Below, piece by piece: positions 19,791 through 61,611 of a stretch of 64,000 nucleotides of DNA. Position 1 is the first letter of the stretch. Each line of letters opens with the position of its first letter. The notes under the pieces were generated by a model. The model was not told where the DNA came from. It worked only from the letters and a program-made list of their open reading frames with translations, and did not search any database. A program made the translations under genes and the position numbers. The DNA lies in the IMG/VR virus record IMGVR_UViG_3300032288_004964, positions 62,001 through 126,000 of that record; one strand, given 5' to 3'.

Positions 19791-19994
19791 ATGAATTCAA
19801 TACATGTTACATCTAAAACAAGTTCTATTAGAGCTACTTGGACTCGTGAATTATCAGAGGATTTGAATATGTATCATGGGTTGGATTTTGAAGATGAGCT
19901 ATCTCAAATTCTAAAGAAAGAACTACTAAAAGAAAGATGTAGTGATAGAAAAAAATCTATTAATAAAATTTTCAAACTACAAAAAACATCATAG
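19791..19994 (+). CDS. Mini-protein: major capsid (gp23-like) fragment plus basic tag
   Basis: VTSKTSSIRATWTRELSEDLNMYHGLDFEDELSQIL matches the gp23 block VxAKxRxLKAxWxxELAQDLxAxHGLDAExEL..IL. Confidence 0.65.
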   Translation: MNSIHVTSKTSSIRATWTRELSEDLNMYHGLDFEDELSQILKKELLKERCSDRKKSINKIFKLQKTS

Positions 19995-20014: not shown

Positions 20015-21253
20015 ATGAATGTACTCAGTGTTGTTAATTACTCTAAAATAAATCCCAATATATCAGTTATTAAATCTAAACTAGAAAACAAAAACAATAG
20101 TTTACAATTTCTTCCTCAAATTTTAGATAATTTATCAAAAGATAAAAACTTTAATTATAAAAATCAAAAATTAAAATCAGCTTATGCAATAGATATTGTT
20201 CATAATTTGATTTTAAAATATTATTTCAAAAAAGAAAATAAATTTCATTTACTAGCAACTATTCTTAAAGAGAAGTATGGTTATCTTTATAACTACTACA
20301 TTGATTACTTAATTGAGAGAAATATTATATTACTTCTTTCAAATCACCAGAAAGGTAAAAGTTCAAGAGTGTATTCGATAAATGAATCAGTTCTTAGAGG
20401 CAAAATCACAAGATATAATAATAAAGACAAAGTACTCCTAAAGAAGTATAAATCTAAAGTATCTCAAATAGAAGAAAATGATATTGAAAGTTCTTTAATA
20501 GATGTTGATATTAAAAGAAAACTAGTTAGTGATTTATTTGGTATTCAAATAGAATTTGATAGGTCAATTTTCTATTTAGATAGTCTTAAAAATGAAGATA
20601 TGGATATTTATAATAGAAATAAATATTCAGTAGAATGTGTTAAAGAAGGTCATATATTTTATCACTTTGATAATTATGGCAGAATGCACACTAACTTTAC
20701 TATACTTAAGGCTTTTATTAGAAAGAATTGTTTATTAATTGATGGTGAAGAAACTTGTGAAATGGATATTAAAAATAGTCAGCCTCTTTTCTTATCAAAA
20801 TTAATACAAGATAGTAATACAAAGTGGGTTGATAAAGATGAATTTGAGTTATTCAAGAGTCTAACTATTAACGGTAACTTCTATCAATATATTATGGATA
20901 ACATTAAAACAAAAGATAGAGGTATGGTTAAAGAATTAACATATAAAGTTCTCTTTGGTAGAAATGGTGCTACTAGCAAAGCTGATAAGATATTTATTAG
21001 TTTATTTCCCACAATACATAACTTTATTAAGTTATATAAAAAAGATCATAATGATTATAAAATATTAGCCTATGATTTACAAAAAGCTGAATCTAGTTTA
21101 ATATTCAATAAGATAATTAGACAAGTTATGAACTTATATCCAGATATTAAGATTGTTACAGTTCATGATAGTATAATTGTACCTAAAAAAAATAAAGAAG
21201 AGGTTTTGGCTATTTTTCAAACTAAACTTTATGAAGAATTCGGATTAATATAG
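20015..21253 (+). CDS. Minimal family-A polymerase-like protein
   Basis: GRMHT, motif A DIKNSQP, motif B R..VK...Y.VLFG, LQKAES, motif C VHDS. Confidence 0.6.
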   Translation: MNVLSVVNYSKINPNISVIKSKLENKNNSLQFLPQILDNLSKDKNFNYKNQKLKSAYAIDIVHNLILKYYFKKENKFHLLATILKEKYGYLYNYYIDYLIERNIILLLSNHQKGKSSRVYSINESVLRGKITRYNNKDKVLLKKYKSKVSQIEENDIESSLIDVDIKRKLVSDLFGIQIEFDRSIFYLDSLKNEDMDIYNRNKYSVECVKEGHIFYHFDNYGRMHTNFTILKAFIRKNCLLIDGEETCEMDIKNSQPLFLSKLIQDSNTKWVDKDEFELFKSLTINGNFYQYIMDNIKTKDRGMVKELTYKVLFGRNGATSKADKIFISLFPTIHNFIKLYKKDHNDYKILAYDLQKAESSLIFNKIIRQVMNLYPDIKIVTVHDSIIVPKKNKEEVLAIFQTKLYEEFGLI

Positions 21254-21254
21254 T

Positions 21255-22211
21255 ATGAAAAAGATTTTATTTCTATGTGCTCAACCAGATGTACCTTATT
21301 TTCATTGGCAGGTTGAGGTTATGATTCATAACTTTATGAAAGTTGGAATAAATCCAAATCATATTGAGATTTTATTTTCATATGATTCATCTCCATCTAA
21401 TCAAGGCAGAGAACTAGCCAGTAGATATCCTTATGTTAGATTCTTCTTTTACAAAAGAACAATTTTAGATAATGGTGGTTATATACCTATACTTAGACCA
21501 GATATCATAGAACAACATTTTATGAGTTATCCAGAGTTATCTAATGAAACTATTTTTTATCATGATTCGGATATTGTATTCAGAGAACTTCCAGATTTTA
21601 ATTCTATGAATAATGATGATATATGGTACCTAAGTGATACTATATCTTATATATGTGCTGATTATATAAAATCTAAATCAACTGAATTATTTATTGAGAT
21701 GTGTAGAATATCCGATATTGATCCTCAATTAGTAGAATCAAATAATTCTAATTCAGGTGGTGCTCAGTATCTAATGAAAGGTGTTGATTCTGAATATTGG
21801 AGAGAAGTTAAAGAAAAGGCTTTAGCTTTATATAAATATATGTCTAATAGAGAAAACATTGAAAGAAGGTCATTAACACCTGAAAAACTAGTTAATTATA
21901 ATCCTATACAAAAATGGTGTGCTGATATGTGGGCTGTCCTATGGATGTCTCTAAAAAGAGGAAATAAAGTTCAAATATCCAAAGAGTTAAATTTTAGTTG
22001 GGGAACATCACCAATTTCCGATTATAATTCATGTAAGATATTTCATAATGCTGGTGTTACAACATCTAGTGGTGGTTTATTTTATAAAGGCGAGTTTATT
22101 AATAAGAATCCATTTGAAGAGGATCTTTCCTTTGTTAAAAAAGACACCGCATCTTTTAAATATGTAGAGGCAATTTTATATGCTAAAGATATGAGAAATA
22201 AGCCTTTATAG
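21255..22211 (+). CDS. GT-A glycosyltransferase resembling peptidyl O-glycosyltransferases
   Basis: YFHWQ, Y.P.LRP, DSD (DxD), GGAQY, WCADMWA. Confidence 0.6.
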   Translation: MKKILFLCAQPDVPYFHWQVEVMIHNFMKVGINPNHIEILFSYDSSPSNQGRELASRYPYVRFFFYKRTILDNGGYIPILRPDIIEQHFMSYPELSNETIFYHDSDIVFRELPDFNSMNNDDIWYLSDTISYICADYIKSKSTELFIEMCRISDIDPQLVESNNSNSGGAQYLMKGVDSEYWREVKEKALALYKYMSNRENIERRSLTPEKLVNYNPIQKWCADMWAVLWMSLKRGNKVQISKELNFSWGTSPISDYNSCKIFHNAGVTTSSGGLFYKGEFINKNPFEEDLSFVKKDTASFKYVEAILYAKDMRNKPL

Positions 22212-22235
22212 TTTTTTAAATAAATATATACCTTT

Positions 22236-22385
22236 GTGAAAAGGTTTTATCTAAAATATAAACATGAGACTATAAATGTAGTTGATTTGAATACTTTAGA
22301 AGAAGCTATTTCCTATTTCAGTAAGATAAAAAAATTATCTGTAAGTAATTTGTTGAAAATCTATATTGTCACAGACCAACATTAG
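22236..22385 (+). CDS. Small 49-aa protein (not in ORF track)
   Basis: GTG start after AAATATATA; MKRFYLKYKHETINVVDLNTLEEAISYFSKIKKL... Confidence 0.5.
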   Translation: MKRFYLKYKHETINVVDLNTLEEAISYFSKIKKLSVSNLLKIYIVTDQH

Positions 22386-22403
22386 ACTTTTAATATATAC
22401 ATA

Positions 22404-22940
22404 ATGAATCTTCAAGGTCAAAATATATCTTATGTTATTTTATCATCCGATAGATTAGATGATATGATTTCTATTCTTTATGCTAAAGAATATCAAGTAA
22501 TTCCGATTAAAGGATATTATAGGGGTCAATATGAGGATTCGGTTATGGCTTTTGGTATGGTTGATAATGATAATTTAAGAAAAGATGTTTTATTTTTATT
22601 AAATCATTTTCATCAGGATTGTGCGATTATAAAATACTTAGGTGAACCATCAGCTAGAAAGATTTTTAAAGATGGATCCGAAAAACCACTTGGTATAGTA
22701 ATGTATAATACCGATGCTGAGAATGTTTCTTACTTATACAATGGTCATTCATTCTCATTTATAGAACAAGTTAGATATTGGAAACCTACTAAGAAAGAAG
22801 ATTTCAGAGTGGGTATGATTGTTGAGTATTTTAATAAAGATAAATGGTATGAGAGATTAGTTGAGAATCCTCATGATGAGTATGAAAAACTTTATAAATT
22901 ACTTATAAAGTATGATAAAGTTAGAGTAGCCTCTAAATAA
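22404..22940 (+). CDS. Hypothetical protein
   Basis: G.Y.GQ.EDS, F.QDC motifs; AATATATA promoter. Confidence 0.6.
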   Translation: MNLQGQNISYVILSSDRLDDMISILYAKEYQVIPIKGYYRGQYEDSVMAFGMVDNDNLRKDVLFLLNHFHQDCAIIKYLGEPSARKIFKDGSEKPLGIVMYNTDAENVSYLYNGHSFSFIEQVRYWKPTKKEDFRVGMIVEYFNKDKWYERLVENPHDEYEKLYKLLIKYDKVRVASK

Positions 22941-23721
22941 TCTCAAACCACTTTATACACCTTTCCCAAGACCCTGGAGTTTCTGACATAAAATAAGTAG
23001 AATCACTTATATTATTAATAACATTTAAACCTATTTCTGGTTTATTTATATTTCTCATCAATATAACCTTTTTAGGATTAATCAAATGAGATGGTATGAT
23101 ATCAATTCCTGATATATTACCAGTTACTGTTGTTCCATTATTTTGAATAGTAAATGTATTACTTTTCAATAAATACATATAAACATCTAAACCAACCAAC
23201 ATTGAATTAGCTGGTCCTATTCTGCTATCCATAGCAATCATACTATTCAACATCATTATCTTAGATACTATTTTTCTAAAATTAGAATTATCATTATCAT
23301 AACTTGATAAAGTAGGATCATTCTTAATAGTGACATTCATACTTTGATTATTAGATGAAGTCATTGGATTTAAAGTCAATGATTCTAGCTTTTTTACTAT
23401 ATCATAATAAAGTGATTGATTATCTATCAGTTTTTGAGATTTAACAGTCAAACTTTTCATTTGAGTTGATACAGACATTATATAACTTTCTTCTTCTAAT
23501 CCCCATTCATTTGACTCTTTTTCATTATTCCATTCATCAACTTTATTCTCAAGAATTGCGTCAATTGTTAAATCTCTTCTTTTACTTTTCAGAATATTTT
23601 TATAATCTTCTGTGTCAGAATAAACATATTCTAAATAGTAAATAATCCCGCTAGGTAAAGATGGTTTTGAATTTTCTGAGTAATTACAGACTTTTTCTAA
23701 ATCATATCGAGTAACTGTCAT
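22933..23721 (-). CDS. Protein with major-capsid C-terminal-like segment
   Basis: KI...NSMIA..SRIGPANSMLVG...G.ISGI resembles gp23 N.IA..TRRG.gNf; also RRDLTIDAIL tag. Confidence 0.45.
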   Translation of the reverse strand: MTVTRYDLEKVCNYSENSKPSLPSGIIYYLEYVYSDTEDYKNILKSKRRDLTIDAILENKVDEWNNEKESNEWGLEEESYIMSVSTQMKSLTVKSQKLIDNQSLYYDIVKKLESLTLNPMTSSNNQSMNVTIKNDPTLSSYDNDNSNFRKIVSKIMMLNSMIAMDSRIGPANSMLVGLDVYMYLLKSNTFTIQNNGTTVTGNISGIDIIPSHLINPKKVILMRNINKPEIGLNVINNISDSTYFMSETPGSWERCIKWFEII

Positions 23722-24469
23722 ACTTATTCTTCATTCCATTTTTCTGAGCTTGTGCGTTAGACATCTTCATTATTTCATCTTTACTCATTGCTGATGTTTT
23801 TTGCAATAATTCTAGGTTTCTCTGATAGTATTTCATATCAGGTGCTGTTCTTGAATGATATAAGTGATAACATTTATTAGGAAGTTCAATCCAATTTAAG
23901 AAGTGTTTAACTTTTAGAGATACAAAATCATCTTCAGCTCCCCATCCAACGAATGATTCGTTCCATCCACCAATTCTCATGATGGCATCTTTTCTAAACA
24001 CACAGATACCACCACAAAGAGGAACCTTTTGATGGTCTAATTCGCCTCTACCAGGTCTATTAATTTGTAGTATTTGTTCAAATCTTAATCCAGATTCATT
24101 TTGGTCTAAATCAATAACTGATTTATATGGATTCACCATTTCATATTGTTCTATTGCTTTAAGAGATTCTATAAATTGATTAGGATCCATTATTAAATCA
24201 GAATCTGCAAAAACTATGATATTTGAGTTTGAGTTTTTAATTGCTACATTAAATCCCCAAGATTTATTATAAGGTAATGTTGATTTTAAGAAAATATGTT
24301 TAGCTTTAAGATTTAAGTGTGATATTTTTGAATGTTTATCTTGTTCAACTATAATAACTTCAGACCCGACAAATCCATTTACCCAGTCTAATGTTTTTCT
24401 TAGATTTTGTAATCTATCTGGTGAGTGTCTGTAACCTATTACATAAGTAAAAGCATGTGTATAATTCAT
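23702..24469 (-). CDS. Glycosyltransferase GT2/GT7-like
   Basis: IIVEQD, YNKSWGFN, DSD, GGWNESFVGWGAEDD, HLYH. Confidence 0.85.
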   Translation of the reverse strand: MNYTHAFTYVIGYRHSPDRLQNLRKTLDWVNGFVGSEVIIVEQDKHSKISHLNLKAKHIFLKSTLPYNKSWGFNVAIKNSNSNIIVFADSDLIMDPNQFIESLKAIEQYEMVNPYKSVIDLDQNESGLRFEQILQINRPGRGELDHQKVPLCGGICVFRKDAIMRIGGWNESFVGWGAEDDFVSLKVKHFLNWIELPNKCYHLYHSRTAPDMKYYQRNLELLQKTSAMSKDEIMKMSNAQAQKNGMKNKYDSYSI

Positions 24470-24488
24470 TAATGATATTATTTTTTAA

Positions 24489-25217
24489 TTATACTATAGA
24501 TATGTTGATTTGTTTTGATTCTATAAACTTTTTCACATCTAACTTTCCACTTTTTTCAGAACTATAGAAATTAGACAATGGTAGTGTTTTATCATATCCA
24601 AGTAAATCCACAATTATATCATTATATAGCGATTCACCAAATTTAAGCCAAATGTTATAATCATAATTTGTCTCATGTGTTGTGTGATATATCAGTTCAT
24701 CTTTTATATGATATAGATTTAGACCATTTTTAACACAAGATATTGGAACCCAGTAGTCCCACCAAGGCATTCCAATTACATACTTGTCATTTTTAAAAAT
24801 GTTTGTATATTTAGAATCAAATATAAAGATATCATATCCATATATAAATGGATATTTTTTATCACCATCTAATTCATATCTAGTTCCTATAAAAACTCCA
24901 TTCTTTAGGTATCTTTTATTTATGTTAATTTCACTATCCTCTTTTAATTTAATATCTGAATTTATTATAGCAACTATACCTGATGATTTTTCTTCTATAG
25001 CTTCTAATATAGCGTCCAGCTTAATAAGTCTTTTATTTTTATAATTAAATGTATTATTCGTTTCTATAAATATTACATTAGGATATATATCTTTTATTTT
25101 TTCAATTTCTTCTTTTAGGTTAACTGAATAAACTTGATAATACTTAGACCAAGTATTAATTGAATGACTTTGAACTTCAAAGTTTCCATATGGATTTATT
25201 GTTGTAAATATTTTCAC
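24489..25217 (-). CDS. Putative glycosyltransferase
   Basis: IINSDI, GYDIFIF, IGMPWWDYW, H..H; same domain as C-half of 28032..30125. Confidence 0.55.
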   Translation of the reverse strand: MKIFTTINPYGNFEVQSHSINTWSKYYQVYSVNLKEEIEKIKDIYPNVIFIETNNTFNYKNKRLIKLDAILEAIEEKSSGIVAIINSDIKLKEDSEININKRYLKNGVFIGTRYELDGDKKYPFIYGYDIFIFDSKYTNIFKNDKYVIGMPWWDYWVPISCVKNGLNLYHIKDELIYHTTHETNYDYNIWLKFGESLYNDIIVDLLGYDKTLPLSNFYSSEKSGKLDVKKFIESKQINISIV

Positions 25218-25260
25218 ATATTATATATTCAAAGACTTCTTGTTTGTAATATATAAATAC

Positions 25261-25869
25261 ATGAATATTATTTCCTTTCCTAGAAGTGGACAACATTTGA
25301 TAGAGAGTGTATTAAGACACTTATGTTTACAACATAACATTGATTTTACTTACTGTGAATATTATGGTTGTTGTAATACAATTCCATGTTCAAAAGGATA
25401 TTTAGTTAGTAAAAACCATGATTTTTCCTTGAACTTAGAGATAAAAAAGGATGTTAAATACATTTTACTTTATAGATCTGATATGATATTACAACTAGAA
25501 TCTTATTATAGATTTGCGATTAGAAATAAAGATGTGGAATACAACTATAATGACCTATTAAACTTCATAAAATCTAATACTAACTATTATAATAAATTTT
25601 TAAAAAAATGGGTAGAAAACAGTTATGATAATATAGTTAAAGTAGAGTATTATGATTTTGTTAATTATCCTGTTAAATATTCTAAAATAATTTTTAATCA
25701 CTTTTTTCCAAATTGTGAAATAAAGGAAGATGTATTTAATGATTTACCTAATTTGTACCTATCTATACATAGAGGATTTAAATCAACTAATTTGAATAGC
25801 AAAATTCAAATTTTGAATAAAATGAATGATGATTTGTATAATAGAATAAAATTAGACTTAATCGACTAA
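25261..25869 (+). CDS. Sulfotransferase-like protein
   Basis: PAPS-binding loop ISFPRSG, K.HD, LYR...S, V.YYDFV..P. Confidence 0.65.
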   Translation: MNIISFPRSGQHLIESVLRHLCLQHNIDFTYCEYYGCCNTIPCSKGYLVSKNHDFSLNLEIKKDVKYILLYRSDMILQLESYYRFAIRNKDVEYNYNDLLNFIKSNTNYYNKFLKKWVENSYDNIVKVEYYDFVNYPVKYSKIIFNHFFPNCEIKEDVFNDLPNLYLSIHRGFKSTNLNSKIQILNKMNDDLYNRIKLDLID

Positions 25870-26430
25870 TTTTTGAAAAATACATTTTTTATATTCTATA
25901 TTAGTTTTCATATTTTCTTTTGTGAATTTATGAACAAATCCAGACTCTGAAAATTCACTAACCGGTTTATATTTTTTTGAAACTTCAGTATCTTCAAACA
26001 TAAAGTTTGAGTTGTATATCACAATAAACCCATCTTTATTTAATTTCTCATCTAACCGAATGATAATATCATTAAATTGATTAAAGTTATAAATATCAGT
26101 TGAGTTATTAATTGATGATGTATCTGGCCATCTACAAAGTACACTCATACAGAATATGATATCAAATTTTTCATCTGGTATAATATTTGATATTTTAATT
26201 CTATCTACATTTTTAGTATATTTTTTACTAGTTTTTATTGATTTTTCATCTACTTCAACTCCAAATATCTCAGAATTGCCAAAAAACATAGCTAGTGTTA
26301 CTAATTCTTCACCACTTGAGCTACCAAAGCTTAGAATCTTACAGTTATATTTCTTTCTATTATCATAACAAAATTTAAATATATCAGGGTATCTATTTAT
26401 ACCGGTAGTTGTCATTTTTTGATGTAACAT
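25858..26430 (-). CDS. SAM-dependent methyltransferase
   Basis: ILSFGSSSGEE, GVEVD, FDIIFCMSVL. Confidence 0.7.
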   Translation of the reverse strand: MLHQKMTTTGINRYPDIFKFCYDNRKKYNCKILSFGSSSGEELVTLAMFFGNSEIFGVEVDEKSIKTSKKYTKNVDRIKISNIIPDEKFDIIFCMSVLCRWPDTSSINNSTDIYNFNQFNDIIIRLDEKLNKDGFIVIYNSNFMFEDTEVSKKYKPVSEFSESGFVHKFTKENMKTNIEYKKCIFQKLVD

Positions 26431-26431
26431 A

Positions 26432-27052
26432 CTATTTATCTTTTAATATTTTTCTCATAGCTTCTGATTTAGTCATTGAATTATCTGAACAATGTTTAAA
26501 TGAGCAATGTATTAAACTTGATTCAATTGGAAAATCTTCTACTAAATTATATGATTTTATAAATTCATTTTTTTCGCTAATTAGATTCATCATAATAATC
26601 ATATCAGATGTATGTTTTTTTCCATTATAATCTATAAAATAATCTTGACCTCTTTCACAAAATATATTAAAGATATTACCATAATGTTCACTATTTCCAT
26701 AGACTAAACAAGGAACATGTCCTTGTAATATAGAAAGTGACTCATACTTAATAGCATCATTTGGAGTAAAACCATTGTTTACTACGTCATAATCCGACAT
26801 CCAACCTCCACCTATCTGACTCATAGCTTTCCACCTTATATAACAAGTTATTTCATAATCTATGTTATTTACAGTTGGTATTTTATAGATTAAGTTATAC
26901 TCTTCATCTGTTATCAACACATCTTTTTTTGTGAGAACAATTGGCTCCCATCCAAATTTAATCCAGGAACATTTCCATAAGTCTATTAACTCTTCTTGAT
27001 TTGATCCATTATTAATAAAATCAATATTTTCATAAAATGTATATACTTTCAT
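26432..27052 (-). CDS. Putative DxD glycosyltransferase (GT32-like)
   Basis: W..SW...GW, CYIRW, GGGWMSDYDV. Confidence 0.55.
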   Translation of the reverse strand: MKVYTFYENIDFINNGSNQEELIDLWKCSWIKFGWEPIVLTKKDVLITDEEYNLIYKIPTVNNIDYEITCYIRWKAMSQIGGGWMSDYDVVNNGFTPNDAIKYESLSILQGHVPCLVYGNSEHYGNIFNIFCERGQDYFIDYNGKKHTSDMIIMMNLISEKNEFIKSYNLVEDFPIESSLIHCSFKHCSDNSMTKSEAMRKILKDK

Positions 27053-28035
27053 AATTTATCAATTATTTTTTCATAAGAGTTATATTCAAAGTTTAAATTA
27101 GATTTTAACATGAACTTCTCTATTTTATCTAACATTGATGCTTTTAAATGATTGAATTTATCAATATCTTTATTCTCAAATACCTCATAATTTATTTGAT
27201 TATTTGAATATTTTGATATATCATAAAAGTTTTTAAATAAATTGGACAATCCTTTTAGTCTCCAGTCTCCTTCCCACCAAATAAATATAACAGGTGTATC
27301 AAGAGCTAAACAAGGAAGAGCCGTGTGTAGTCTTGATGTTATTACTAAATCCGCACTATTATATTCATCTAGCAATTTTACACAAGTTTCCATAGAGTCT
27401 TTGTATGTTCCCTCTCTTAACTCATATATATCATGGTCTGTGAAGATTGCATTATCTAATATATTTTTAGGTATTCTTCCCTTCATATTATTGTAATATT
27501 GATCACTTGGTATTTCATAGATAAAGTCTTTTTTAAATTTATTTAAATTGTCTTTACCCATTTGACTAACTGGTCCGTCTCCATTCCACATTCTATCTAA
27601 TTCATTTATAATTATCTTACCTGTTTTATTTTTTGGCTTATTAGATTTTAATAATAATGTTAAACAAGATGAAAAATATGAGTTTGTGTTGATTTCTTTT
27701 AACTTTTCATATGAATTAATATCTCTTAATCCAACTTCATTTGTTTTAAAAAAATTAGGCATTTCATCAAAACATTTAGGTTGTAAGTTTACTGATATAG
27801 GTAATATGTTTCTCATATTTTCTAAATATGAGAAATCACCAACAGCTGTATTTGTCCACCCATTGTATATCATGAAACTTTTCTCATCATATTTAAAAAT
27901 ATCATTAGTCCTATCTAACCTACCATTGTCTCTGTTTATTGTATGTGTCACTTCTGGATAGAACTGTAGTGTTGCTAATGATTGAATCCAATCACCCGCG
28001 TTTATTGAGCTGTAATCTAAAGAATAATAATTCAT
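27049..28035 (-). CDS. Polysaccharide pyruvyl transferase
   Basis: NAGD.IQ, GLRD..S, VITSRLH.ALP.LA..TP. Confidence 0.8.
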   Translation of the reverse strand: MNYYSLDYSSINAGDWIQSLATLQFYPEVTHTINRDNGRLDRTNDIFKYDEKSFMIYNGWTNTAVGDFSYLENMRNILPISVNLQPKCFDEMPNFFKTNEVGLRDINSYEKLKEINTNSYFSSCLTLLLKSNKPKNKTGKIIINELDRMWNGDGPVSQMGKDNLNKFKKDFIYEIPSDQYYNNMKGRIPKNILDNAIFTDHDIYELREGTYKDSMETCVKLLDEYNSADLVITSRLHTALPCLALDTPVIFIWWEGDWRLKGLSNLFKNFYDISKYSNNQINYEVFENKDIDKFNHLKASMLDKIEKFMLKSNLNFEYNSYEKIIDKL

Positions 28036-30125
28036 TTATCTAATAATATTTTTTTATCATATGTCTTTTCCATCCAGTCTTTTCCGGTAAATTTAAAATT
28101 AGGAGACTTTTCTGACATCCAATTATAAGCTATTTTTATATTTTTAATATTTGTTTCTGAAAACATATTTTCTTTTTTTTGCCAATATGATTCATGTTTT
28201 TCGTGATATGATACATTGGGTGTTTCACAGACTAATCCTTGTTTTTCAAATTGTTGTTTGAAAACTATATCTCCTTCTATACTTTTACCCATTGTTATTC
28301 TAAAAATCCAATCCCAACTAGGTCTACCTATTATTTGACCATCTGGTATATAGTCTCTCCATTCCCTCCACCATGATTTAGTTACTGCGAACAAATCAGC
28401 ACCTTTTGGATGATCACCACAATCTGACCATTTAGCTAACTCTACTTCCTCTTTACTCATTTCTCTTTCTAACTTAAATGGGAAGTCTTTTCTAAATGAA
28501 AATGTACACTTCCACCTATTACAAGATTCTACTATTTTTTCATATAAATCATCTGTTAAACATATATCACAATTAGTGTACATGACTATATCATTATCAT
28601 TTTGGCACATATTATATCCATAATCAAACAAATCTTTTATCATTGGTATCTCTAAATCATCTATCCTGTTATATCTTAAACAAGGAATAATTTTTTTATT
28701 TTCATATAATTTTTTCCAAGTTTTCTGTGCAAATTCTATTCTTTTATTGGTTTCAACATCATATGATTTGTACAAGGATGATACATGATATATAAATTGT
28801 TGACAATCTTCTATATCAGATTCCATATCCGTTTTTAATTTCTCTCCAAAAAACAAAATATCACTTAAAGATTCTAAAACATTCTTATGAGATTGACTAT
28901 GAAATAACTCATAGAATTCAGAATCTGATAAAAACCTATCTGTCTTTCTTCCTTTCCAGTTTTTATAAGCATCTCCTAAGTGTATAACTGACTTCTCAAA
29001 CTTACCTCTTTTTGTAAATTTGTCTCTAAATTGTAAATCACTCCATGCAGCATCATCTGAAAACTCAGGAAATGGTAATTCCTTATTAATATTTGAATTG
29101 TTAATATTAAATAGTTGGAAAAATCCTAATCCTTTATTTATTTCATATTTTCCTAATTTTTCTATTTCTATTTTACCTTCTTCCCAATCTCTATAAGTAT
29201 TATAATCTTTACATATATACCTATCTGATGTGTATAATAAATCAATATCAGTATCAATATTTATTTTTTGAGTTATTATGATATCAGCATCTAATAGTAA
29301 AATCCAATCTGGATTTTCAATTGATTTTATACCATCATTTATAGCTTTTCCTTTATTAAAAGTAGCTCCATTTTCATACATTCTATCTGTGACCACACAT
29401 TTAACTCCAAACTTATCACATATTTTTTGACACATTAAATCATCAGCTGATGTTACTACTGTTATGTCCTCAAAATATTTAATATTATTACTTAAAGAGA
29501 GTAATAAGTAATCATTATAGTTAACTGAGACTATAATAACAGATATTTTATTAATTTCATTTATTGGATTTACTACAATTGATTCTATACTATTTGATAT
29601 AGTTCTTCTAGATACCGGCTTTGAAACCTTAACCATTACTGATTCTTTATCTGGATTTATATTAGGTCTTTTATTTATAACATTAATATCTAATGTTATT
29701 TTATTAGAAATTATAGAATCTATTACATTAACATTATCTTCTATTTTAGAACTTGAATTGAATATTAATGCGTCTAGTGAATTTTTATTTTCTTTTCCAT
29801 TAAATTTTGAATTTACATAAATTAAATTTTCAATTAGGTTAATTTTATTAACTTTAAATAAACTATTATCAAATTTTGCAAACTTATTTGCCCATATTAT
29901 AGTTTTATTTGGATATATTTTATGTACAGCCTTTAGTAGCTCTATATCAGTACCTTTGTTTTCAAAAACAACAACTTTATTTTTATTTAAATTAAAATAT
30001 GGAAAATTAACAAAGATGATTATTCTAGATATCAATGAATTGGATATATTATAATCCAGTGAGTTTATAAATTCTGGTCCAAAATCATCAAATTCTTTTT
30101 CTGTTAATTTAATTACAAGTATCAT
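28032..30125 (-). CDS. Multidomain glycosyltransferase (GT2 plus second GT domain)
   Basis: ISVIIVSVNY, FNKGKAIN, LLDADI, GFFQLF; then YTNCDI, GADLF, IGRPSWDW. Confidence 0.75.
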   Translation of the reverse strand: MILVIKLTEKEFDDFGPEFINSLDYNISNSLISRIIIFVNFPYFNLNKNKVVVFENKGTDIELLKAVHKIYPNKTIIWANKFAKFDNSLFKVNKINLIENLIYVNSKFNGKENKNSLDALIFNSSSKIEDNVNVIDSIISNKITLDINVINKRPNINPDKESVMVKVSKPVSRRTISNSIESIVVNPINEINKISVIIVSVNYNDYLLLSLSNNIKYFEDITVVTSADDLMCQKICDKFGVKCVVTDRMYENGATFNKGKAINDGIKSIENPDWILLLDADIIITQKINIDTDIDLLYTSDRYICKDYNTYRDWEEGKIEIEKLGKYEINKGLGFFQLFNINNSNINKELPFPEFSDDAAWSDLQFRDKFTKRGKFEKSVIHLGDAYKNWKGRKTDRFLSDSEFYELFHSQSHKNVLESLSDILFFGEKLKTDMESDIEDCQQFIYHVSSLYKSYDVETNKRIEFAQKTWKKLYENKKIIPCLRYNRIDDLEIPMIKDLFDYGYNMCQNDNDIVMYTNCDICLTDDLYEKIVESCNRWKCTFSFRKDFPFKLEREMSKEEVELAKWSDCGDHPKGADLFAVTKSWWREWRDYIPDGQIIGRPSWDWIFRITMGKSIEGDIVFKQQFEKQGLVCETPNVSYHEKHESYWQKKENMFSETNIKNIKIAYNWMSEKSPNFKFTGKDWMEKTYDKKILLDK

Positions 30126-30155
30126 AAAGTTATATATAAAGAAAAATCATTTCCA

Positions 30156-30560
30156 ATGAAAAAAACTATAGGCAGATGTGAAAAAATTTCACTTGTGGAT
30201 TTAGGATTAGATTCTAAGGCTAAAATAGACACAGGTGCTTATTCAACCGTTATTCATGTTGATGGTGTTAAAGTTATAGATAATAAATTGCAATTTTGGA
30301 TTGGTGATAAATCAAACAAATTTACTTTTTATGATTATAAAAAAATAACAGTAAGAAGTTCCTTTGGAAAAAAACAAAAAAGATACAGTATTTTAACTAG
30401 ATTAAAAGTAGGTAATAAAGTTTATAAAATTTATGTATCTTTAACAGATAGAAAAAAAATGAAATATCCAATATTAATAGGTAGAAGATTTCTCCATAAG
30501 TTTGGATATATTGTTGATGTAACAAAGAAAAATATTTATGATACCACTAAAAAGGTGTAA
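30156..30560 (+). CDS. Retropepsin-like aspartic protease (RimK-associated/DUF785 type)
   Basis: AKIDTGA, LTDR..MKYPILIGRRFL. Confidence 0.85.
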   Translation: MKKTIGRCEKISLVDLGLDSKAKIDTGAYSTVIHVDGVKVIDNKLQFWIGDKSNKFTFYDYKKITVRSSFGKKQKRYSILTRLKVGNKVYKIYVSLTDRKKMKYPILIGRRFLHKFGYIVDVTKKNIYDTTKKV

Positions 30561-31056
30561 TTATATCACCGGTGATAGTTCCTCAGTATCTTATGGATTA
30601 GATAAGATAATTAATTTTCTAGAATTAGAAGGTAAAAATATTATTGTTTTTTTCCCTAAACCAAAATCATATTACAATTCTCTTACTTATTTCGTGAATA
30701 ATAGAAAAGAGTATGATGGATTTGATAACCTAAAGTCATTCATAGAAACCGAAGGAACTCTTTTTAGAGTTAATTTAATAATTTTAGATATTTGGCATTT
30801 AAGAAATTTAAGTAAAGAATATATTGACTTAGTAAAATCAACAGGAATTGATTTTATATTAGTATCTAGAAATTATCATTATACTTCTTCAGAAGATGTT
30901 TGTGATTATCACATAAAAAGAGAATCTGTTTCACATAGAAATTCAGACCAATTTTTCATAACAGATAAACTAAATGGTTGGACTACCGATTTAGATGCTC
31001 TTAGAATATCATATATTAGAGATATTAAAATAAACAAATTATTTGACAAAGAATAG
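30538..31056 (+). CDS. Possible degenerate P-loop protein with RDxKI tag
   Basis: YITGDSSS, LIILD, C-terminal IRDIKINKLF. Confidence 0.45.
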   Translation: MIPLKRCNYITGDSSSVSYGLDKIINFLELEGKNIIVFFPKPKSYYNSLTYFVNNRKEYDGFDNLKSFIETEGTLFRVNLIILDIWHLRNLSKEYIDLVKSTGIDFILVSRNYHYTSSEDVCDYHIKRESVSHRNSDQFFITDKLNGWTTDLDALRISYIRDIKINKLFDKE

Positions 31057-31110
31057 TTAAATTTGTTAAATGTTAAATTTATCCGTATATTTATATTAAA
31101 TATAAACTAA

Positions 31111-32202
31111 ATGAGAATTAGAAAAAAGTTTTTAAAACTTACAAACTACACCTATCCACATGGAACAGAAGGATTTTTGAAAGGATTCCTACCTCAAGGA
31201 TATCAAGAAGATGGATATGGTAATTATTACTATCTAATCGGAGATAATCCATCTACAATGTTTACTTGTCACTTAGATACTGCTTGTAGAGAACAAGAAA
31301 GAGTAAAACATATTTTCAGTGGTAATATGATTATGACTGATGGTAAAACAATATTAGGAGCCGATGATAAAGCGGGAATGGTTGTTATTCTTAATATGAT
31401 TGAGAAAAAAGTACCAGGTCTCTATTTATTTTTTATAGGAGAAGAAGTTGGATGTATTGGCTCTGGTTTATTAGCTGATAATTGGAGTAAATTTCCACAT
31501 TCAAAATCTATAACTAAAGTAGTTTCATTTGACCGAAGAGGTACATCATCTGTTATTACTCATCAATTTTGGGGAAGATGTTGTTCAGATGAGTTTGGTA
31601 AGATATTAGCTGGTAGATTATCTTCAACAAGTGATAGATTAATGTTAGATATTGATGATACTGGTGTTATGACTGATTCTGCTAAGTTTATGAGATTAGT
31701 TCAAGAATGTACCAATATATCAGTTGGTTATTATAATGAACATACATTCAAAGAGTGTCAAAATATTGAGTATCTACAAATATTGTGTGATGCTGTTGTT
31801 CAAATTGATTGGGAAACCCTACCAATTGTTAGAAGTGTTGATGAAATTGATTTTGAAGAAGAAGATGAATATGATTATATTGACTCTGATGATTTTGAAA
31901 TGAAAGATGAGTATGAAGAAGAATTCTTTTCACACTTTAAGTATAAAGATGGTGTTAAGAAAATGTTTATTTCAAAAAGACATATTTCAAAAGAAAGATT
32001 AATTATTTGGAATTGGATTAATTCAAGATGTGAATATAGTGGTGTTAGTTCTTTTACTTGGAATGGAAACTCTCTTCATATTGATAATGAGTTTGTTGGT
32101 AATAGAATTGACCTAATAGATATGATTAGTCAATTATCATCTGTTCCTACATCTGAATTATCTCCAGTTCCTACAAGGATATCAAAAAAAATCCTGATGT
32201 AA
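31111..32202 (+). CDS. M28/M20-clan zinc peptidase
   Basis: CHLDT, GADDKAG, GEEVG, FDRRG, NISVGY.NEH. Confidence 0.85.
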   Translation: MRIRKKFLKLTNYTYPHGTEGFLKGFLPQGYQEDGYGNYYYLIGDNPSTMFTCHLDTACREQERVKHIFSGNMIMTDGKTILGADDKAGMVVILNMIEKKVPGLYLFFIGEEVGCIGSGLLADNWSKFPHSKSITKVVSFDRRGTSSVITHQFWGRCCSDEFGKILAGRLSSTSDRLMLDIDDTGVMTDSAKFMRLVQECTNISVGYYNEHTFKECQNIEYLQILCDAVVQIDWETLPIVRSVDEIDFEEEDEYDYIDSDDFEMKDEYEEEFFSHFKYKDGVKKMFISKRHISKERLIIWNWINSRCEYSGVSSFTWNGNSLHIDNEFVGNRIDLIDMISQLSSVPTSELSPVPTRISKKILM

Positions 32203-58585: not shown

Positions 58586-58626
58586 ACTTTAAATAATTAA
58601 TATATACAAAAAAGATAAAATTATTA

Positions 58627-61611
58627 ATGCCAGCAACTTATAGTATAAATAATAATACAGCATATGAAGCGGTTAGATTAACCACAATAGGATCCGTACT
58701 TAATCTCCTACCTGATAATACAAATAAATTAATCTCACCAAGAGATACTAGAGATGCTATTTATTCATCATGGGAGGCATCTGTATTTAAACAATTAACC
58801 GGTAGCGCTTCCATTGAATATATTGGTATTGATAGAAATGGACTAAATAATAAAATTTTATTTGGTAAAAAACAATTAGCTGGATTAGATGTTCTTAATA
58901 GTACTTTATTAAATTATAATTTTAATGATACTGATATTTTCTTTTTTAATAACAAAAATGGTATTACACCAAGTAATACAAAAATATCTTTTTTAGCTGG
59001 TACAAATTCAATTTTATATCCATATGCTCCTTATATAAACTCATATCAAGGAACATCATCTTTGCATTTAGAAATTGTTAATCAAACAGGTGATATAACA
59101 ATTGATAGTAGTATTGGTAGAGTTTCAATTAATAATGTAACTTTTCCTACAAAATTAGAAACCGCGTCGGCGTCAAATGGTCAAATATTAAAATACTATA
59201 ATGGTAGATTAATTTGGGATAATAACACAATTAATCTTGCTTCAATTGGAAGTACCAACTCTGTTACTAATATTTATGGTAGTCCAGTTTTAGTGAACGG
59301 ACACAGTTTAGAATTAACTGAGTCTTCTCCTATAATTGCAACATTTGGGAATATAGAACCAGGTCAAACATTTAGTAGTGCTCCTTTAACAGAAGTTGTT
59401 AGACAAATGTTATACCCACATTTAGGTCCTGATGTTAGTTTATTAATTAATGTTAGTCCTTATAATGAAACACCTAGTGGTTATACTACATCAGCAGTTG
59501 CTGAATTTGGAAATATATATGTTTCGGATATTGAATTAGCTTGGTCTATTACTAAAAAGTCAGATCCTGTTATATTTGCTGGATTGAGTAATTCTTATGT
59601 GGGTGGGTTTGCTCCTACTTTACCTATTAGTTATCCGGGATTAACATCTATTTCTGGTGTTTCTTTAGGATACACTCCTTCTACTTCAATGACTTATACT
59701 TTAAGTGTTTATGATAGTGGTGTTACTAATTATCCATTAGATAATATGGCAATTGCTACTGGATCAAGTACTGTTACTTACGCTACTGCCTCAGTTACCT
59801 TAGATTTGGTTTATCCATTCTTTTATGGCGTTTCCACTTATAGTGTTGTTTCTGGGACATCCAATTTTGTTAGATCTCAGTTAGATTTAATTATACCCAC
59901 TCTTAATAAACTAATTGAAAAAGAATCTGATAAGTCTGTTCCACTAAGTGGTACAGGTTATATTTATTATTGTATACCAGAGACATATCAATCATTGGTT
60001 CAAGTAATTGATCAGAATGGATTTGATATCACTACATCATTTGAACAAATTTTAAGATATATTGGACCTAATGAATATAACCCACTTATAGAATCCCCTG
60101 ATTCATATTGGGATAATATTGGATATGAAATTTGGAAACATGGACCAACTACTGTTGTTCCTAGTTTAACTGACTGGCAATTTAAATTAGCGGCTCCTAC
60201 TACTACAACTACAACAACTACTGCTGCGCCAACTACAACAACTACAACAACTGCTGCACCAACAACTACAACAACAACGGTAGCTCCTACTACAACAACT
60301 ACAACAACTGTGGCTCCGACTACAACTACAACTACAACTGCAGCACCTATACCTGATTTTGTATATGGTCAGTCTATTATGTATGATGTAGCTGGTGCGA
60401 TTGATATAAGTTCACCCTTGAATATAATTGTGGCTAGTCCATCAACTGTAAAAGTTATATCTACACAAGGTCAGAGAACTCCAATTAATACAATTGGTAC
60501 TGGATTATTCTTATTTACATATGTTCCGAATGATCCATTAGACTATGGTAATTATAATATCCAATTAGATTCAAATACATATACAAATGCTATGATTATT
60601 AATACTAATCTTACTCCACCTACTGCTCCTATGCCTAATTGTGCTATAGATACTGCAATTTGGGATAGTATAGATACTGTAAACTTTACAAGTTTGCAAA
60701 TTTGGGATCCAACTTCTGTTGTAGTATATGATCCAAACTTTAACATAGTTAGTAGCACAGTTACTAGTTTATTACCAGCATCTATACAGTTTACTCCTAC
60801 TATGTTAGGTACTTATAGTGTGGCTTTAGATTCATTTAATGTTCCTTTTTACTCGGATCCACTTAGACCTAATCCTTGTGTATATAGATTTGATATAGCT
60901 ACTTATTCACCTGCTACAACAACTACTACAACAACTGCGGCACCGACTACAACTACAACAACGGCAGCTCCAACTACAACAACTACAACAACTGCTTATG
61001 TATGTCCATCTGGTGATTTTTATTCATATGTAAGTCCTACTAGCTCTAATTATATTACAATAGTTTCTGCTGGTAATATTCAATTAGTTGATGACAATTT
61101 ACATTCTGGTAATATTACTGTTTTGGGCCCACCATCAAATACTAATCCTCTTACTAATGTTTATCCACTTCAATCGGGAACATTCTCATTTACATTTGAT
61201 ATCTTTGATCCTAATTTTTCTCAGTATGGACTATTCTGGATTGTAATTAGTGATGGTACTTATAGTTGTACTTATAAACAAATGCCTACTCCTCCACATA
61301 GTCCAGTAGATGCTGGTGTTTATATTCCGGATTCAGAGCCGGCTCCAATAACTTCAGGTAATGGCTCTTTAGAATGTGCTGTAAATGACTTAATTGCTGA
61401 TACTGGTACTAAAAATATTGCTAGTCCAACTAACATTAATGTAGTTGATGTAAACTCAGTTATTTTCTGGGATGAGTCTTATAATGTAATAACTCCTATC
61501 ACACCAATAGTTGTCGGTCATCTAAATGCTACATTTACAAGTTTAAATCCTTTATCAAATTATTACATTAGTGTGGATGGATGTTTATATAATGTTGTTA
61601 GTTCTGCATAA
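58627..61611 (+). CDS. Paralogous virion protein with mucin-like Thr tracts
   Basis: Shares N- and C-terminal modules with 56201..58585; (A/V)APTn repeats. Confidence 0.7.
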   Translation: MPATYSINNNTAYEAVRLTTIGSVLNLLPDNTNKLISPRDTRDAIYSSWEASVFKQLTGSASIEYIGIDRNGLNNKILFGKKQLAGLDVLNSTLLNYNFNDTDIFFFNNKNGITPSNTKISFLAGTNSILYPYAPYINSYQGTSSLHLEIVNQTGDITIDSSIGRVSINNVTFPTKLETASASNGQILKYYNGRLIWDNNTINLASIGSTNSVTNIYGSPVLVNGHSLELTESSPIIATFGNIEPGQTFSSAPLTEVVRQMLYPHLGPDVSLLINVSPYNETPSGYTTSAVAEFGNIYVSDIELAWSITKKSDPVIFAGLSNSYVGGFAPTLPISYPGLTSISGVSLGYTPSTSMTYTLSVYDSGVTNYPLDNMAIATGSSTVTYATASVTLDLVYPFFYGVSTYSVVSGTSNFVRSQLDLIIPTLNKLIEKESDKSVPLSGTGYIYYCIPETYQSLVQVIDQNGFDITTSFEQILRYIGPNEYNPLIESPDSYWDNIGYEIWKHGPTTVVPSLTDWQFKLAAPTTTTTTTTAAPTTTTTTTAAPTTTTTTVAPTTTTTTTVAPTTTTTTTAAPIPDFVYGQSIMYDVAGAIDISSPLNIIVASPSTVKVISTQGQRTPINTIGTGLFLFTYVPNDPLDYGNYNIQLDSNTYTNAMIINTNLTPPTAPMPNCAIDTAIWDSIDTVNFTSLQIWDPTSVVVYDPNFNIVSSTVTSLLPASIQFTPTMLGTYSVALDSFNVPFYSDPLRPNPCVYRFDIATYSPATTTTTTTAAPTTTTTTAAPTTTTTTTAYVCPSGDFYSYVSPTSSNYITIVSAGNIQLVDDNLHSGNITVLGPPSNTNPLTNVYPLQSGTFSFTFDIFDPNFSQYGLFWIVISDGTYSCTYKQMPTPPHSPVDAGVYIPDSEPAPITSGNGSLECAVNDLIADTGTKNIASPTNINVVDVNSVIFWDESYNVITPITPIVVGHLNATFTSLNPLSNYYISVDGCLYNVVSSA
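60190..60348 (+). repeat. Coding tandem repeat (A/V)APT6-8, five units
   Basis: ACT/ACA tracts separated by GCN CCN. Confidence 0.9.
60910..60996 (+). repeat. Second poly-Thr/AP repeat block
   Basis: PATTTTTTTAAPTTTTTTAAPTTTTTTTA. Confidence 0.9.

Follow-up and report, generated by a model that had tools for sequence, protein, structure and literature searches.

A predicted glycan-building and sulfation gene cluster in a huge freshwater phage

We found that a 385-kb huge freshwater phage carries a cluster of predicted soluble enzymes for adding and decorating sugars, and that one of them belongs to a widespread phage enzyme family whose homologs lay beside capsid, tail or fiber proteins with poly-threonine tracts in 7 of 8 phage contexts. 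This points to glycosylated virus particles rather than to glycosylated DNA, and we consider virion glycosylation the best-supported reading of the cluster (probability of about 55%), although it is inferred from sequence and predicted structure alone. The analyzed window comprises 64,000 nucleotides (positions 62,001 to 126,000 of IMG/VR record IMGVR_UViG_3300032288_004964), and all coordinates refer to it. A sequence-only reading had described positions 21255-30125 as a glycan-building cluster with about six glycosyltransferase (GT) domains plus pyruvyl-, sulfo- and methyltransferases under late-type promoters, and our analysis confirmed this observation, with the ORFs lying at the stated coordinates. 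The region encodes five supported GT-A domains (ORF 21255, the 255-aa GT2, the 242-aa ORF and the middle and C-terminal domains of the 697-aa ORF), one unverified protein with a DxD-type motif (206 aa), a pyruvyltransferase, a SAM methyltransferase and a small PAPS-type sulfotransferase (Table 1).

Table 1. Features of the cluster and of a candidate acceptor gene in the 64,000-nt window.
Coordinates	Strand	Feature	Supporting evidence
21255..22211	+	318-aa GT-A glycosyltransferase, phrog_4417; candidate poly-Thr protein O-glycosyltransferase; accessory module	PHROG 4.9e-71; more than 3000 homologs
22404..22940	+	178-aa protein of unknown role, conserved beside the cluster	Weak S-AdoMet lyase hit (Pfam E 0.0043, below cut-off); exact TTAATATATA 4 nt before its ATG; conserved in the related contigs L010, L014 and L015
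22933..23721	-	262-aa protein with a Gp23 (major capsid)-like segment (residues 107-196) and an Asn/Ser-rich middle; last gene of the core operon, overlapping the GT2 gene by 20 nt; possible structural protein or acceptor	Pfam Gp23 4.3e-5, just under cut-off; BLASTP 1e-4 to the phage's own capsid protein; co-conserved with the GT2 gene in L010, L014 and L015
23702..24469	-	255-aa GT2-family glycosyltransferase; core operon	Pfam Glyco_transf_7C 1e-8 (35.1 bits against a threshold of 23) and Glycos_transf_2 1.4e-6 (28.8 bits against 23.3); phrog_1721
24489..25217	-	242-aa GT-A glycosyltransferase, GTG start; first gene of the left core operon	Invariant N86-S-D88, W152-W-D154 and H178/H181; relatives at 68 viral loci
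25218..25260	.	43-bp divergent control region	GAATATATA 2 nt before the GTG of 25217 (minus strand); TAATATATA 5 nt before the ATG at 25261 (plus strand)
25261..25869	+	202-aa small PAPS-type sulfotransferase; variable cassette	Start more likely ATG 25261 than TTG 25240; invariant P7-R-S-G10, a 5'-PSB-like motif
25858..26430	-	190-aa class I SAM methyltransferase; variable cassette	Pfam Methyltransf_31 1.3e-7; NCBIfam pseudaminic-acid-associated methylase 1.5e-6, sub-threshold
26432..27052	-	206-aa putative glycosyltransferase, unverified; variable cassette	Invariant D87-Y-D89
27049..28035	-	328-aa polysaccharide pyruvyl (ketal) transferase; variable cassette	Pfam PS_pyruv_trans (PF04230) 4.2e-13, 50.3 bits against a cut-off of 25.3, profile positions 1-278 of 280
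28032..30125	-	697-aa three-part protein: N-domain (1-185) of unknown function, middle GT-A domain (about 190-410), C-terminal GT-A domain (about 435-693); first gene of the right operon	2204 homologs with modular fusions
30126..30155	.	30-bp divergent control region	TTATATATA (one mismatch) 5 nt before the ATG of the 697-aa gene (minus strand)
58627..61611	+	994-aa fiber-like protein with eight (A/V)AP-T6-8 repeats (residues 523-572 and 764-790); candidate acceptor for ORF 21255	Pfam Mucin-like hit; poly-Thr scan; exact late-type motif upstream; followed by a tail-fiber gene with an S74 chaperone domain

The sequence-only reading had proposed that ORF 21255 resembles peptidyl Ser/Hyp O-glycosyltransferases and could act as the priming enzyme. 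The protein itself did not match the HPAT (PF23452; GT95/GT96) or SGT families: no Pfam family was hit at E<=5, including Glyco_transf_8, and only 10% of one neighboring Atlas cluster carried PF23452. However, its AlphaFold2 model (pLDDT 93.5) showed a single Rossmann-like GT-A domain closest to the retaining GT8/GT24 group, with Foldseek matches to UGGT, WbbM and LgtC (E 6e-7; probability 1.00 to many GT-A structures) and a VIA Z of 14.9 to glycogenin. The resemblance to GT8 is at fold level only. The acidic DxD-type motif, H103-D104-S105-D106, was invariant in 38 sequences.

For the 242-aa ORF, the AlphaFold2 model (pLDDT 88.3) also showed a GT-A fold, with top Foldseek hits to polypeptide GalNAc-transferases (ppGalNAc-T2), chondroitin synthase, WrtF, RmlT and SpsA. 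The C-terminal domain of the 697-aa protein was homologous to this 242-aa family (hhalign 96.4%, E 1.3e-9). Its middle domain carries conserved D279-A-D281 and H382 and scored only E 0.008 to PF00535, but ESM Atlas models matched GT2 clusters, and 29 of 51 homologs, which are multi-GT fusions, carried Pfam GT2 somewhere in the protein. In contrast, a profile of the 206-aa protein built from 21 homologs gave no Pfam or PDB match, and hhalign comparison to the other families was negative. The sulfotransferase was weak when searched alone (Sulfotransfer_3, E 0.17, 12.5 bits against a threshold of 27), and its assignment rests on its family profile, which hit solved SULTs (SULT1B1, 6.5e-8, with the 5'-phosphosulfate-binding loop aligned) and the phage's own bona fide sulfotransferase (4.5e-6), and on homologs that carry PF00685 or PF13469.

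Elsewhere in the genome, we identified an APS kinase (2e-65), two more sulfotransferases and two further glycosyltransferase loci. The APS kinase and a sulfotransferase sit among collagen-repeat, lectin-like and poly-Thr proteins. No cluster protein contained a hydrophobic segment, and a hydrophobicity scan of the whole genome, albeit crude, listed no initiating phosphoglycosyltransferase and no polytopic flippase- or polymerase-like (Wzx/Wzy-like) protein; the only highly hydrophobic ORF was the 1080-aa one at 14611-17853. A search with PF01370 found no NAD-epimerase-type nucleotide-sugar gene, so all sugar donors would have to come from the host.

The TATATA signals that the sequence-only reading had placed before 30125 and 25217 are part of a real, promoter-like motif, TTAATATATA, which was about 31-fold enriched upstream of genes. 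TATATA alone occurred in 34% of upstream 30-nt windows, compared to 2.8% of random windows. The full motif is exact before 22404 and 25261 and has one mismatch before 30125 and 25217. It precedes the capsid gene and fiber-like genes, but not PolB, helicase, RNR or ThyA. That it is a late promoter is inferred only from which genes carry it. The motif also precedes genes of unknown class, and its link to large ORFs is weak (12/36 against 77/397, P = 0.054).

To investigate the proposed acceptor of ORF 21255, we examined eight unrelated phage contexts of phrog_4417 homologs. In iLp84, phiFL1C, PMBT8, prophage 1_EfsPF36 and R3.3, the homolog lies directly after capsid or tail-tube genes whose products end in poly-Thr. 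In Chryseobacterium phage MA9V-3 and a 430-kb phage contig it lies beside poly-Thr proteins, which in the 430-kb contig are large and fiber-like and neighbor gp13 and baseplate genes. Only Enterococcus phage Planchet showed no poly-Thr within 5 kb. None of 66 control loci (730 kb) contained such tracts (Fisher P = 4e-9, although the loci are not independent). The phage studied here encodes three poly-Thr proteins, one of them in the window. Further, among five relatives holding the core operon (697-aa, 242-aa, GT2 and the 262-aa Gp23-like protein), only the one with an ORF 21255 homolog had poly-Thr coding (T7 runs). The co-occurrence gives strong genomic support to a peptide O-glycosyltransferase role, but since ORF 21255 is absent from relatives that keep the core operon, we regard it as a separable module and not as the demonstrated primer for the rest.

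The order of the core operon, with overlapping genes, was conserved across at least four related contigs, whereas the cassette is swapped between relatives. Distant homologs of the 242-aa enzyme lie in small phage contigs, in sugar cassettes (DUF6492, methyltransferases, NDP-sugar epimerase/dehydratase) among large tail-like ORFs. The cassette was near-identical in runs from three further studies (freshwater, groundwater and plankton), while no RNA run held the region. The cluster was absent from the closest large relatives by DnaB, and the 697-aa and pyruvyltransferase proteins had no tblastn match in the phage collection.

We propose that the region is a cytoplasmic protein-glycosylation toolkit of a phage that probably infects Bacteroidota, and that it most likely decorates virion surface proteins by means of two separable modules. 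In this view, ORF 21255 would add the first sugar to threonines in poly-Thr tails or linkers of structural proteins, with the 994-aa fiber-like protein and the two poly-Thr proteins outside the window as candidates. The second module would consist of the two leftward operons running from TTAATATATA-type promoters, whose conserved core would be complemented by a swappable cassette adding pyruvate ketal, O-methyl and sulfate groups to give an anionic glycan, with sulfation fed by the phage's own APS kinase. The analysis itself establishes the enzyme families and folds (the latter from models), predicted solubility, gene order, motif enrichment and the genomic co-occurrence with poly-Thr proteins, while the acceptor, the order of the reactions, the sugars, the late timing, any effect on the virion and the presence of a glycan as such are inferred. 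The core operon persists in relatives that lack both ORF 21255 and poly-Thr coding, and its acceptor need not be a virion protein. The interpretation given by the sequence-only reading, virion glycosylation or host-surface remodeling for superinfection exclusion rather than T4-style DNA glucosylation, is supported in part.

While we favor virion proteins as the target, we cannot exclude that the soluble transferases act at the cytoplasmic face of the membrane on undecaprenyl-phosphate-linked capsule, LPS or exopolysaccharide intermediates and use the host's own flippase and polymerase, which would change the cell surface during infection, for example to block superinfection or to alter aggregation. 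Pyruvyl-, methyl- and sulfotransferases are classic polysaccharide-decorating enzymes, and glycans decorated in this way are typical of cell surfaces. A second locus holds a GT9 heptosyltransferase-like gene and a GT4 gene, the cassette is exchanged in the way O-antigen or capsule loci are, and the core operon does not depend on poly-Thr proteins. Nevertheless, we consider this reading unlikely given the lack of membrane-embedded polysaccharide machinery in the hydrophobicity scan, the motif shared with capsid and fiber genes, and the location of ORF 21255 and 242-aa relatives inside structural modules of other phages. Also doubtful, at a similar level, is a mixed or other target, in which the core operon builds a free or protein-anchored polymer outside the virion, such as an intracellular or released glycan, or in which the modules serve unrelated purposes and are clustered only because this is a variable genome region. 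The independent gain and loss of ORF 21255 and the cassette relative to the core, and the missing matches in the closest large relatives and the phage collection, would fit this, but the conserved order of the core operon and the shared control motifs speak against it.

Modification of phage DNA to evade restriction and CRISPR, as in T4 and other phages with glycosylated hydroxymethyl-pyrimidines, appears very unlikely. Phage glycosyltransferases of the GT-A fold are reported to modify DNA (reference 46 in PMC12619734), huge phages face many defense systems, and a weakly SAM-lyase-like ORF sits in the cluster. However, the genome contains a single ThyA-family gene (PF00303) with ThyA-type active-site residues, including the ThyA-type Asn, and about 2e-72 to solved thymidylate synthases, and no TET/JBP gene (PF12851) was found. 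Moreover, sulfation and pyruvylation of DNA sugars are not known to occur, and phrog_4417 occurs in 36-43-kb temperate siphophages directly after capsid or tail genes.

The closest comparison is with mycobacteriophage virion glycosylation (Freeman et al. 2023, Cell Host Microbe; cited in PMC12619734 and PMC11256854), where phage-encoded cytoplasmic glycosyltransferases are reportedly proposed to put glycans on C-terminal tails of capsid and tail-tube subunits. The phrog_4417 contexts show exactly such tails, as poly-Thr. Here, the enzymes belong to other families (a GT8-like phrog_4417 protein and multi-GT-A proteins), the phages are those of Bacillota and Bacteroidota and include a huge phage, and the candidate acceptors include internal mucin-like linkers of fiber proteins; for the predicted pyruvate, methyl and sulfate decorations and a phage APS kinase, we know of no counterpart. 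The fibril glycosylation clusters of giant viruses (Mimiviridae) likewise involve large genomes with several loci of multi-domain GT-A and GT-B enzymes, pyruvyltransferase and methyltransferase fusions, and glycans built in the cytoplasm on surface fiber proteins without host export machinery, and BFVD matches to GT8-like proteins of Klosneuvirus, Mimivirus and Hyperionvirus were observed. The present cluster differs in belonging to a tailed phage of bacteria, in the lack of nucleotide-sugar synthesis genes in the PF01370 search and in its sulfation genes. With the retaining GT8/GT24 enzymes that act on proteins (glycogenin, UGGT and the Skp1 alpha-galactosyltransferase), ORF 21255 shares the predicted fold (VIA Z 14.6-14.9 over 214-229 aligned residues, rmsd 3.4-3.8) and a DxD-type motif at a sequence identity of only 7-13%. 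Finally, capsule, EPS and O-antigen loci share the decorating enzyme families and the cassette-like replacement between relatives, but the cluster described here has no initiating phosphoglycosyltransferase, flippase, polymerase or export genes, and all of its products are predicted to be soluble.

The window is bases 62001-126000 of a single viral contig that is 385,333 bp long with about 27% G+C, and IMG/VR and CheckV rate it about 95% complete. It represents a tailed phage, as it encodes a T4-type capsid protein (PF07068, 1.2e-28, outside the window), a tail fibre with an S74 chaperone domain, DnaB, family B polymerase, RNR and ThyA. Its DnaB is 84% identical to that of two uncultured 635-642-kb phage genomes, which may belong to the huge-phage clade predicted to infect Bacteroidota. 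Additionally, a TAnnTTTG element, the Bacteroidota -7 consensus, precedes some genes. The family B polymerase ORF stops after about 155 positions of the polymerase domain and is followed by a gene on the opposite strand, suggesting a split or interrupted polymerase, and a gene for an I-TevI-type homing endonuclease was also identified. Near-identical copies of the cluster were detected in sequencing runs from three further studies, labelled freshwater, groundwater and plankton, whereas no RNA run contained it. Joints in the mapped reads, with sides of about 21 nt at 85% likeness, were disregarded. No alternative genetic code was used.

Coordinates of the features discussed (window positions, or positions on the whole contig where marked G000)
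Position	Strand	Feature
3932-5269	-	I-TevI-type homing endonuclease gene
14611-17853	+	1080-aa ORF with hydrophobic segments
19791-19994	+	small ORF matching part of the Gp23 capsid model
20015-21253	+	412-aa ORF
22386-22403		promoter-like motif, example
22933-23721	-	262-aa ORF with Gp23-like segment
23702-24469		GT2
25249-25260		promoter-like motif, example
25261-25869		small sulfotransferase, by family profile
25858-26430		SAM methyltransferase
27049-28035		pyruvyltransferase
30156-32202	+	RimB-like, 172-aa and M28-peptidase-like proteins
38317-40017	+	family B DNA polymerase ORF
40012-40665	-	gene following the polymerase ORF
50966-52417	+	Ro60-like protein
58590-58626		promoter-like motif, example
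58627-61611		994-aa poly-Thr protein
G000:16340-21518		further glycan locus
G000:30982-32664		full capsid gene
G000:127439-127693		small ORF matching part of the Gp23 capsid model
G000:174367-176847		poly-Thr protein next to the sulfation genes
G000:177314-180268 (window 115314-118268, beyond the window end)		sulfation locus
G000:179687-180268		APS kinase
G000:224244-228386		poly-Thr protein
G000:291066-297125		further glycan locus
G000:304199-304318		small ORF matching part of the Gp23 capsid model

The glycan-building cluster that a sequence-only reading had described is real, and its genes lie where that reading had placed them. Pfam alone names only three of them (the GT2, the SAM methyltransferase and the pyruvyltransferase), while the others required profiles and predicted folds. 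ORF 21255 belongs to phrog_4417, annotated as unknown function, and has more than 3000 homologues. Its AF2 model (pLDDT 93.5) is a GT-A fold nearest to the retaining GT8/GT24 group, namely UGGT, WbbM, LgtC, glycogenin, LARGE1 and the Skp1 galactosyltransferase (Foldseek E 6e-7; VIA Z 14.9), and it contains an invariant HDSD motif, whereas a sequence search against PDB returned no match. The 242-aa ORF is predicted to fold as a GT-A domain (pLDDT 88), with polypeptide GalNAc-transferases, chondroitin synthase, WrtF, RmlT and SpsA as best matches. Searches of the 242-aa family against PDB, and a tblastn search of one of its distant homologues against annotated phages, found nothing.

The 697-aa ORF is modular and gave no match in sequence searches against Pfam, PDB and INPHARED. 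Because our initial homologue search covered only proteins of 0.55-1.75 times the query length, its domain-level relatives were collected by a length-free search. The 2204 homologues reuse an N-domain plus middle-domain unit and a C-terminal unit in fusions with GT2, GT25, GT1, GT32, Branch, pyruvyltransferase and methyltransferase domains. The middle domain carries a DAD motif and a conserved His, scores E 0.008 to PF00535 on its own, and its Atlas model matches viral GT2 clusters, while the C-terminal domain is homologous to the 242-aa family (hhalign 96.4%). The small ORF starting at 25261 is a sulfotransferase by family profile, with 6.5e-8 to solved SULTs with the PAPS loop aligned. The profile also detected the bona fide sulfotransferase of the phage at 4.5e-6, although BLASTP between the two found nothing. 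The 206-aa ORF shows only an invariant DYD motif, as its family matched neither PDB nor Pfam and hhalign against the other families was negative. We therefore count five supported GT domains plus one putative, close to the estimate of about six from sequence alone.

None of the cluster proteins has a hydrophobic segment, and a crude hydrophobicity scan detected no flippase- or polymerase-like membrane protein in the genome. The 1080-aa ORF has about 21 hydrophobic segments, locally higher G+C (33%), no Pfam match and a one-mismatch late-type motif upstream, and may be a tape-measure-like or membrane-active protein. A single ThyA-family gene with ThyA-type residues and no TET/JBP were found. 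A hydroxymethyl-pyrimidine route to DNA glycosylation is therefore not encoded.

Although the family annotation of the genome is not complete, the phage invests heavily in glycans and sulfate outside the cluster. An APS kinase (2e-65) lies beside a cytidylyltransferase-like gene and a bona fide sulfotransferase (1e-12), among collagen-repeat, ConA/laminin-G-like, LRR and poly-Thr proteins. A phage-encoded PAPS supply seems unusual, and literature searches found nothing on a phage sulfotransferase plus APS kinase. Of the two further glycan loci, the one at G000:16-21.5 kb holds a sulfotransferase, a GT9 heptosyltransferase-like gene, a GT4 and a methyltransferase, and the one at G000:291-297 kb a GT61, two GT1-like genes and a uridine-kinase fusion protein. 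No NAD-epimerase-type nucleotide-sugar gene was found.

The TATATA signal noted in the sequence-only reading is not an accident of A+T richness, since it occurs in 34% of 30-nt upstream windows against 2.8% of random windows. The full promoter-like motif is TTAATATATA, which is 31-fold enriched and lies upstream of 109 of 433 ORFs, while the TAnnTTTG element is separate and precedes other genes. The motif has two spacing classes. In one it ends 4-7 nt before the ATG, which would give nearly leaderless mRNAs, and in the other it ends 17-28 nt before the ATG. It precedes the capsid gene and its neighbours, the 1947-, 794- and 994-aa ORFs and, with one mismatch, the tail fibre, but not PolB, helicase, RNR or ThyA. 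In the cluster it is exact before 22404 and 25261 and has one mismatch before 30125 and 25217. The designation of these promoters as late is a reasonable inference from the genes that carry the motif. Enrichment among large ORFs is only marginal (P = 0.054).

One contig from another sample carries the cluster at 100% protein identity, and four related contigs allowed us to separate core from accessory genes. The order 697-aa, 242-aa, GT2, 262-aa is kept. The block of pyruvyltransferase, 206-aa, methyltransferase and sulfotransferase genes is replaced in one relative by three other genes, one of which has weak, sub-threshold DUF6492 and Stealth CR2 hits, and is absent in two other relatives. 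This swappable decorating cassette suggests diversifying selection on the particle or cell surface. ORF 21255 is present in only one relative. The gene for the 262-aa product, which has a Gp23-like segment, overlaps the GT2 gene and is co-conserved with it, but evolves faster. Besides the full capsid gene, four small ORFs, of which this is the second, each match a different piece of the Gp23 capsid model (in the order window 19791-19994, window 22933-23721, G000:304199-304318 and G000:127439-127693: positions 138-185, 189-279, 155-194 and 300-376). The first two are conserved in related phages, and the four may be paralogue remnants, small structural proteins or decoys.

Genes flanking the cluster are also conserved. 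The 412-aa ORF, which has no Pfam or PDB match, is retained next to it in three related contigs (74-92% identity). Motifs resembling those of family A polymerases were seen in this ORF by eye, but neither Pfam nor PDB supports this reading. Directly on the other side lie a protein with a RimB-like / putative ATP-dependent zinc protease domain (1.6e-17), a 172-aa unknown and an M28-peptidase-like protein, which are conserved with the cluster in two relatives (L014 and L016). Elsewhere in the window, a Ro60-like protein combines a TROVE domain (5.9e-17) with a vWA domain.

In annotated phages, the ORF 21255 homologue lies inside the structural module. In iLp84, it follows the capsid gene; the capsid protein ends in T7, the next small protein has five T6-12 runs, and the major tail protein ends in T7. 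In phiFL1C and PMBT8, it follows the major tail protein, which ends in T5-T7 runs and in T16, respectively. In prophage 1_EfsPF36 and phage R3.3, it follows capsid-like and tail-like ORFs that end in poly-Thr, and in Chryseobacterium phage MA9V-3 it follows two ORFs with three T6 runs each. In a 430-kb phage contig, it follows a 1590-aa and a 308-aa protein with long Thr tracts, beside gp13 and baseplate genes. Only Enterococcus phage Planchet lacks poly-Thr within 5 kb.

In contrast, 66 viral loci without the gene (730 kb) have no T>=6 run in any ORF. The control loci are mostly from other phage groups with different composition, and the loci are not independent, so that the Fisher P-value of 4e-9 overstates the case. 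The present genome encodes three such poly-Thr proteins. Among five related records with the core operon, only the one with an ORF 21255 homologue has T7 coding runs; the others include a 263-kb and a 176-kb record. Complex prediction of ORF 21255 with residues 515-580 of the 994-aa poly-Thr protein gave a score of 0.01, which counts neither for nor against binding. Literature searches found nothing on a poly-Thr link to phage glycosyltransferases.

The interpretation offered from sequence alone is supported in part. Virion glycosylation, its preferred reading, is the best supported and DNA glucosylation is unlikely, but two corrections apply. ORF 21255, which had been likened to peptidyl Ser/Hyp O-glycosyltransferases and suggested as a priming enzyme, is GT8-like by predicted fold and does not match the Hyp/Ser transferase families, and it is a separate accessory module rather than the shown primer of the core operon. 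While the gene order, the enzyme assignments, the motif enrichment and the co-occurrence with poly-Thr proteins are results of our analysis, glycosylation of poly-Thr by ORF 21255, the late timing and any action on the virion are inferred from sequence, context and predicted structure. For the core operon, whose acceptor is not identified, evidence that it also works on structural proteins is indirect, and consists of the shared promoter motif, the Gp23-like gene predicted to be co-transcribed, predicted soluble enzymes with no export machinery by the crude hydrophobicity scan, and relatives of the 242-aa enzyme sitting in sugar cassettes among tail-like genes of small phages. Such a conserved cassette, comprising a 242-aa-like GT-A, DUF6492, two methyltransferases and an NDP-sugar epimerase/dehydratase, lies between large tail-like ORFs and 600-, 267- and 357-aa ORFs in a group of small, largely unannotated phages (two JGI contigs of 23 kb and 18.5 kb and about 50 IMG/VR loci), and is possibly another virion-glycosylation system. 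We cannot exclude host-surface remodelling through host lipid carriers, which remains a live rival.

More tentatively, and less likely than not, phrog_4417 could be a previously unrecognised, widespread family of phage polypeptide threonine O-glycosyltransferases. In this view, it makes mucin-like poly-Thr tails and linkers on capsids, tail tubes and fibres into glycan brushes, from 36-kb Lactobacillus and Enterococcus prophages to huge Bacteroidota phages. In the present phage, the virion glycans would be further pyruvylated, methylated and sulfated with phage-made PAPS, which would be the first sulfated glycocalyx on a bacterial virus. The three to four sulfotransferases and the APS kinase suggest sulfated surface glycans, which could change particle charge, adhesion and grazing or decay in fresh water. 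The link between poly-Thr and phrog_4417 also provides an unannotated family of more than 3000 members with a directly testable function in culturable phages.

Virion glycosylation has been shown in mycobacteriophages, where it affects antibody recognition. If it is common in phages of lactic acid bacteria, enterococci, staphylococci and Bacteroidota, it bears on phage therapy, on dairy phage biology and on how phages stick to mucus or evade receptors. The association of phrog_4417 with poly-Thr is the pattern expected if this family glycosylates poly-Thr tails, and it matches what is reported for the C-terminal tails of mycobacteriophage capsid and tail-tube proteins (cited in PMC12619734).
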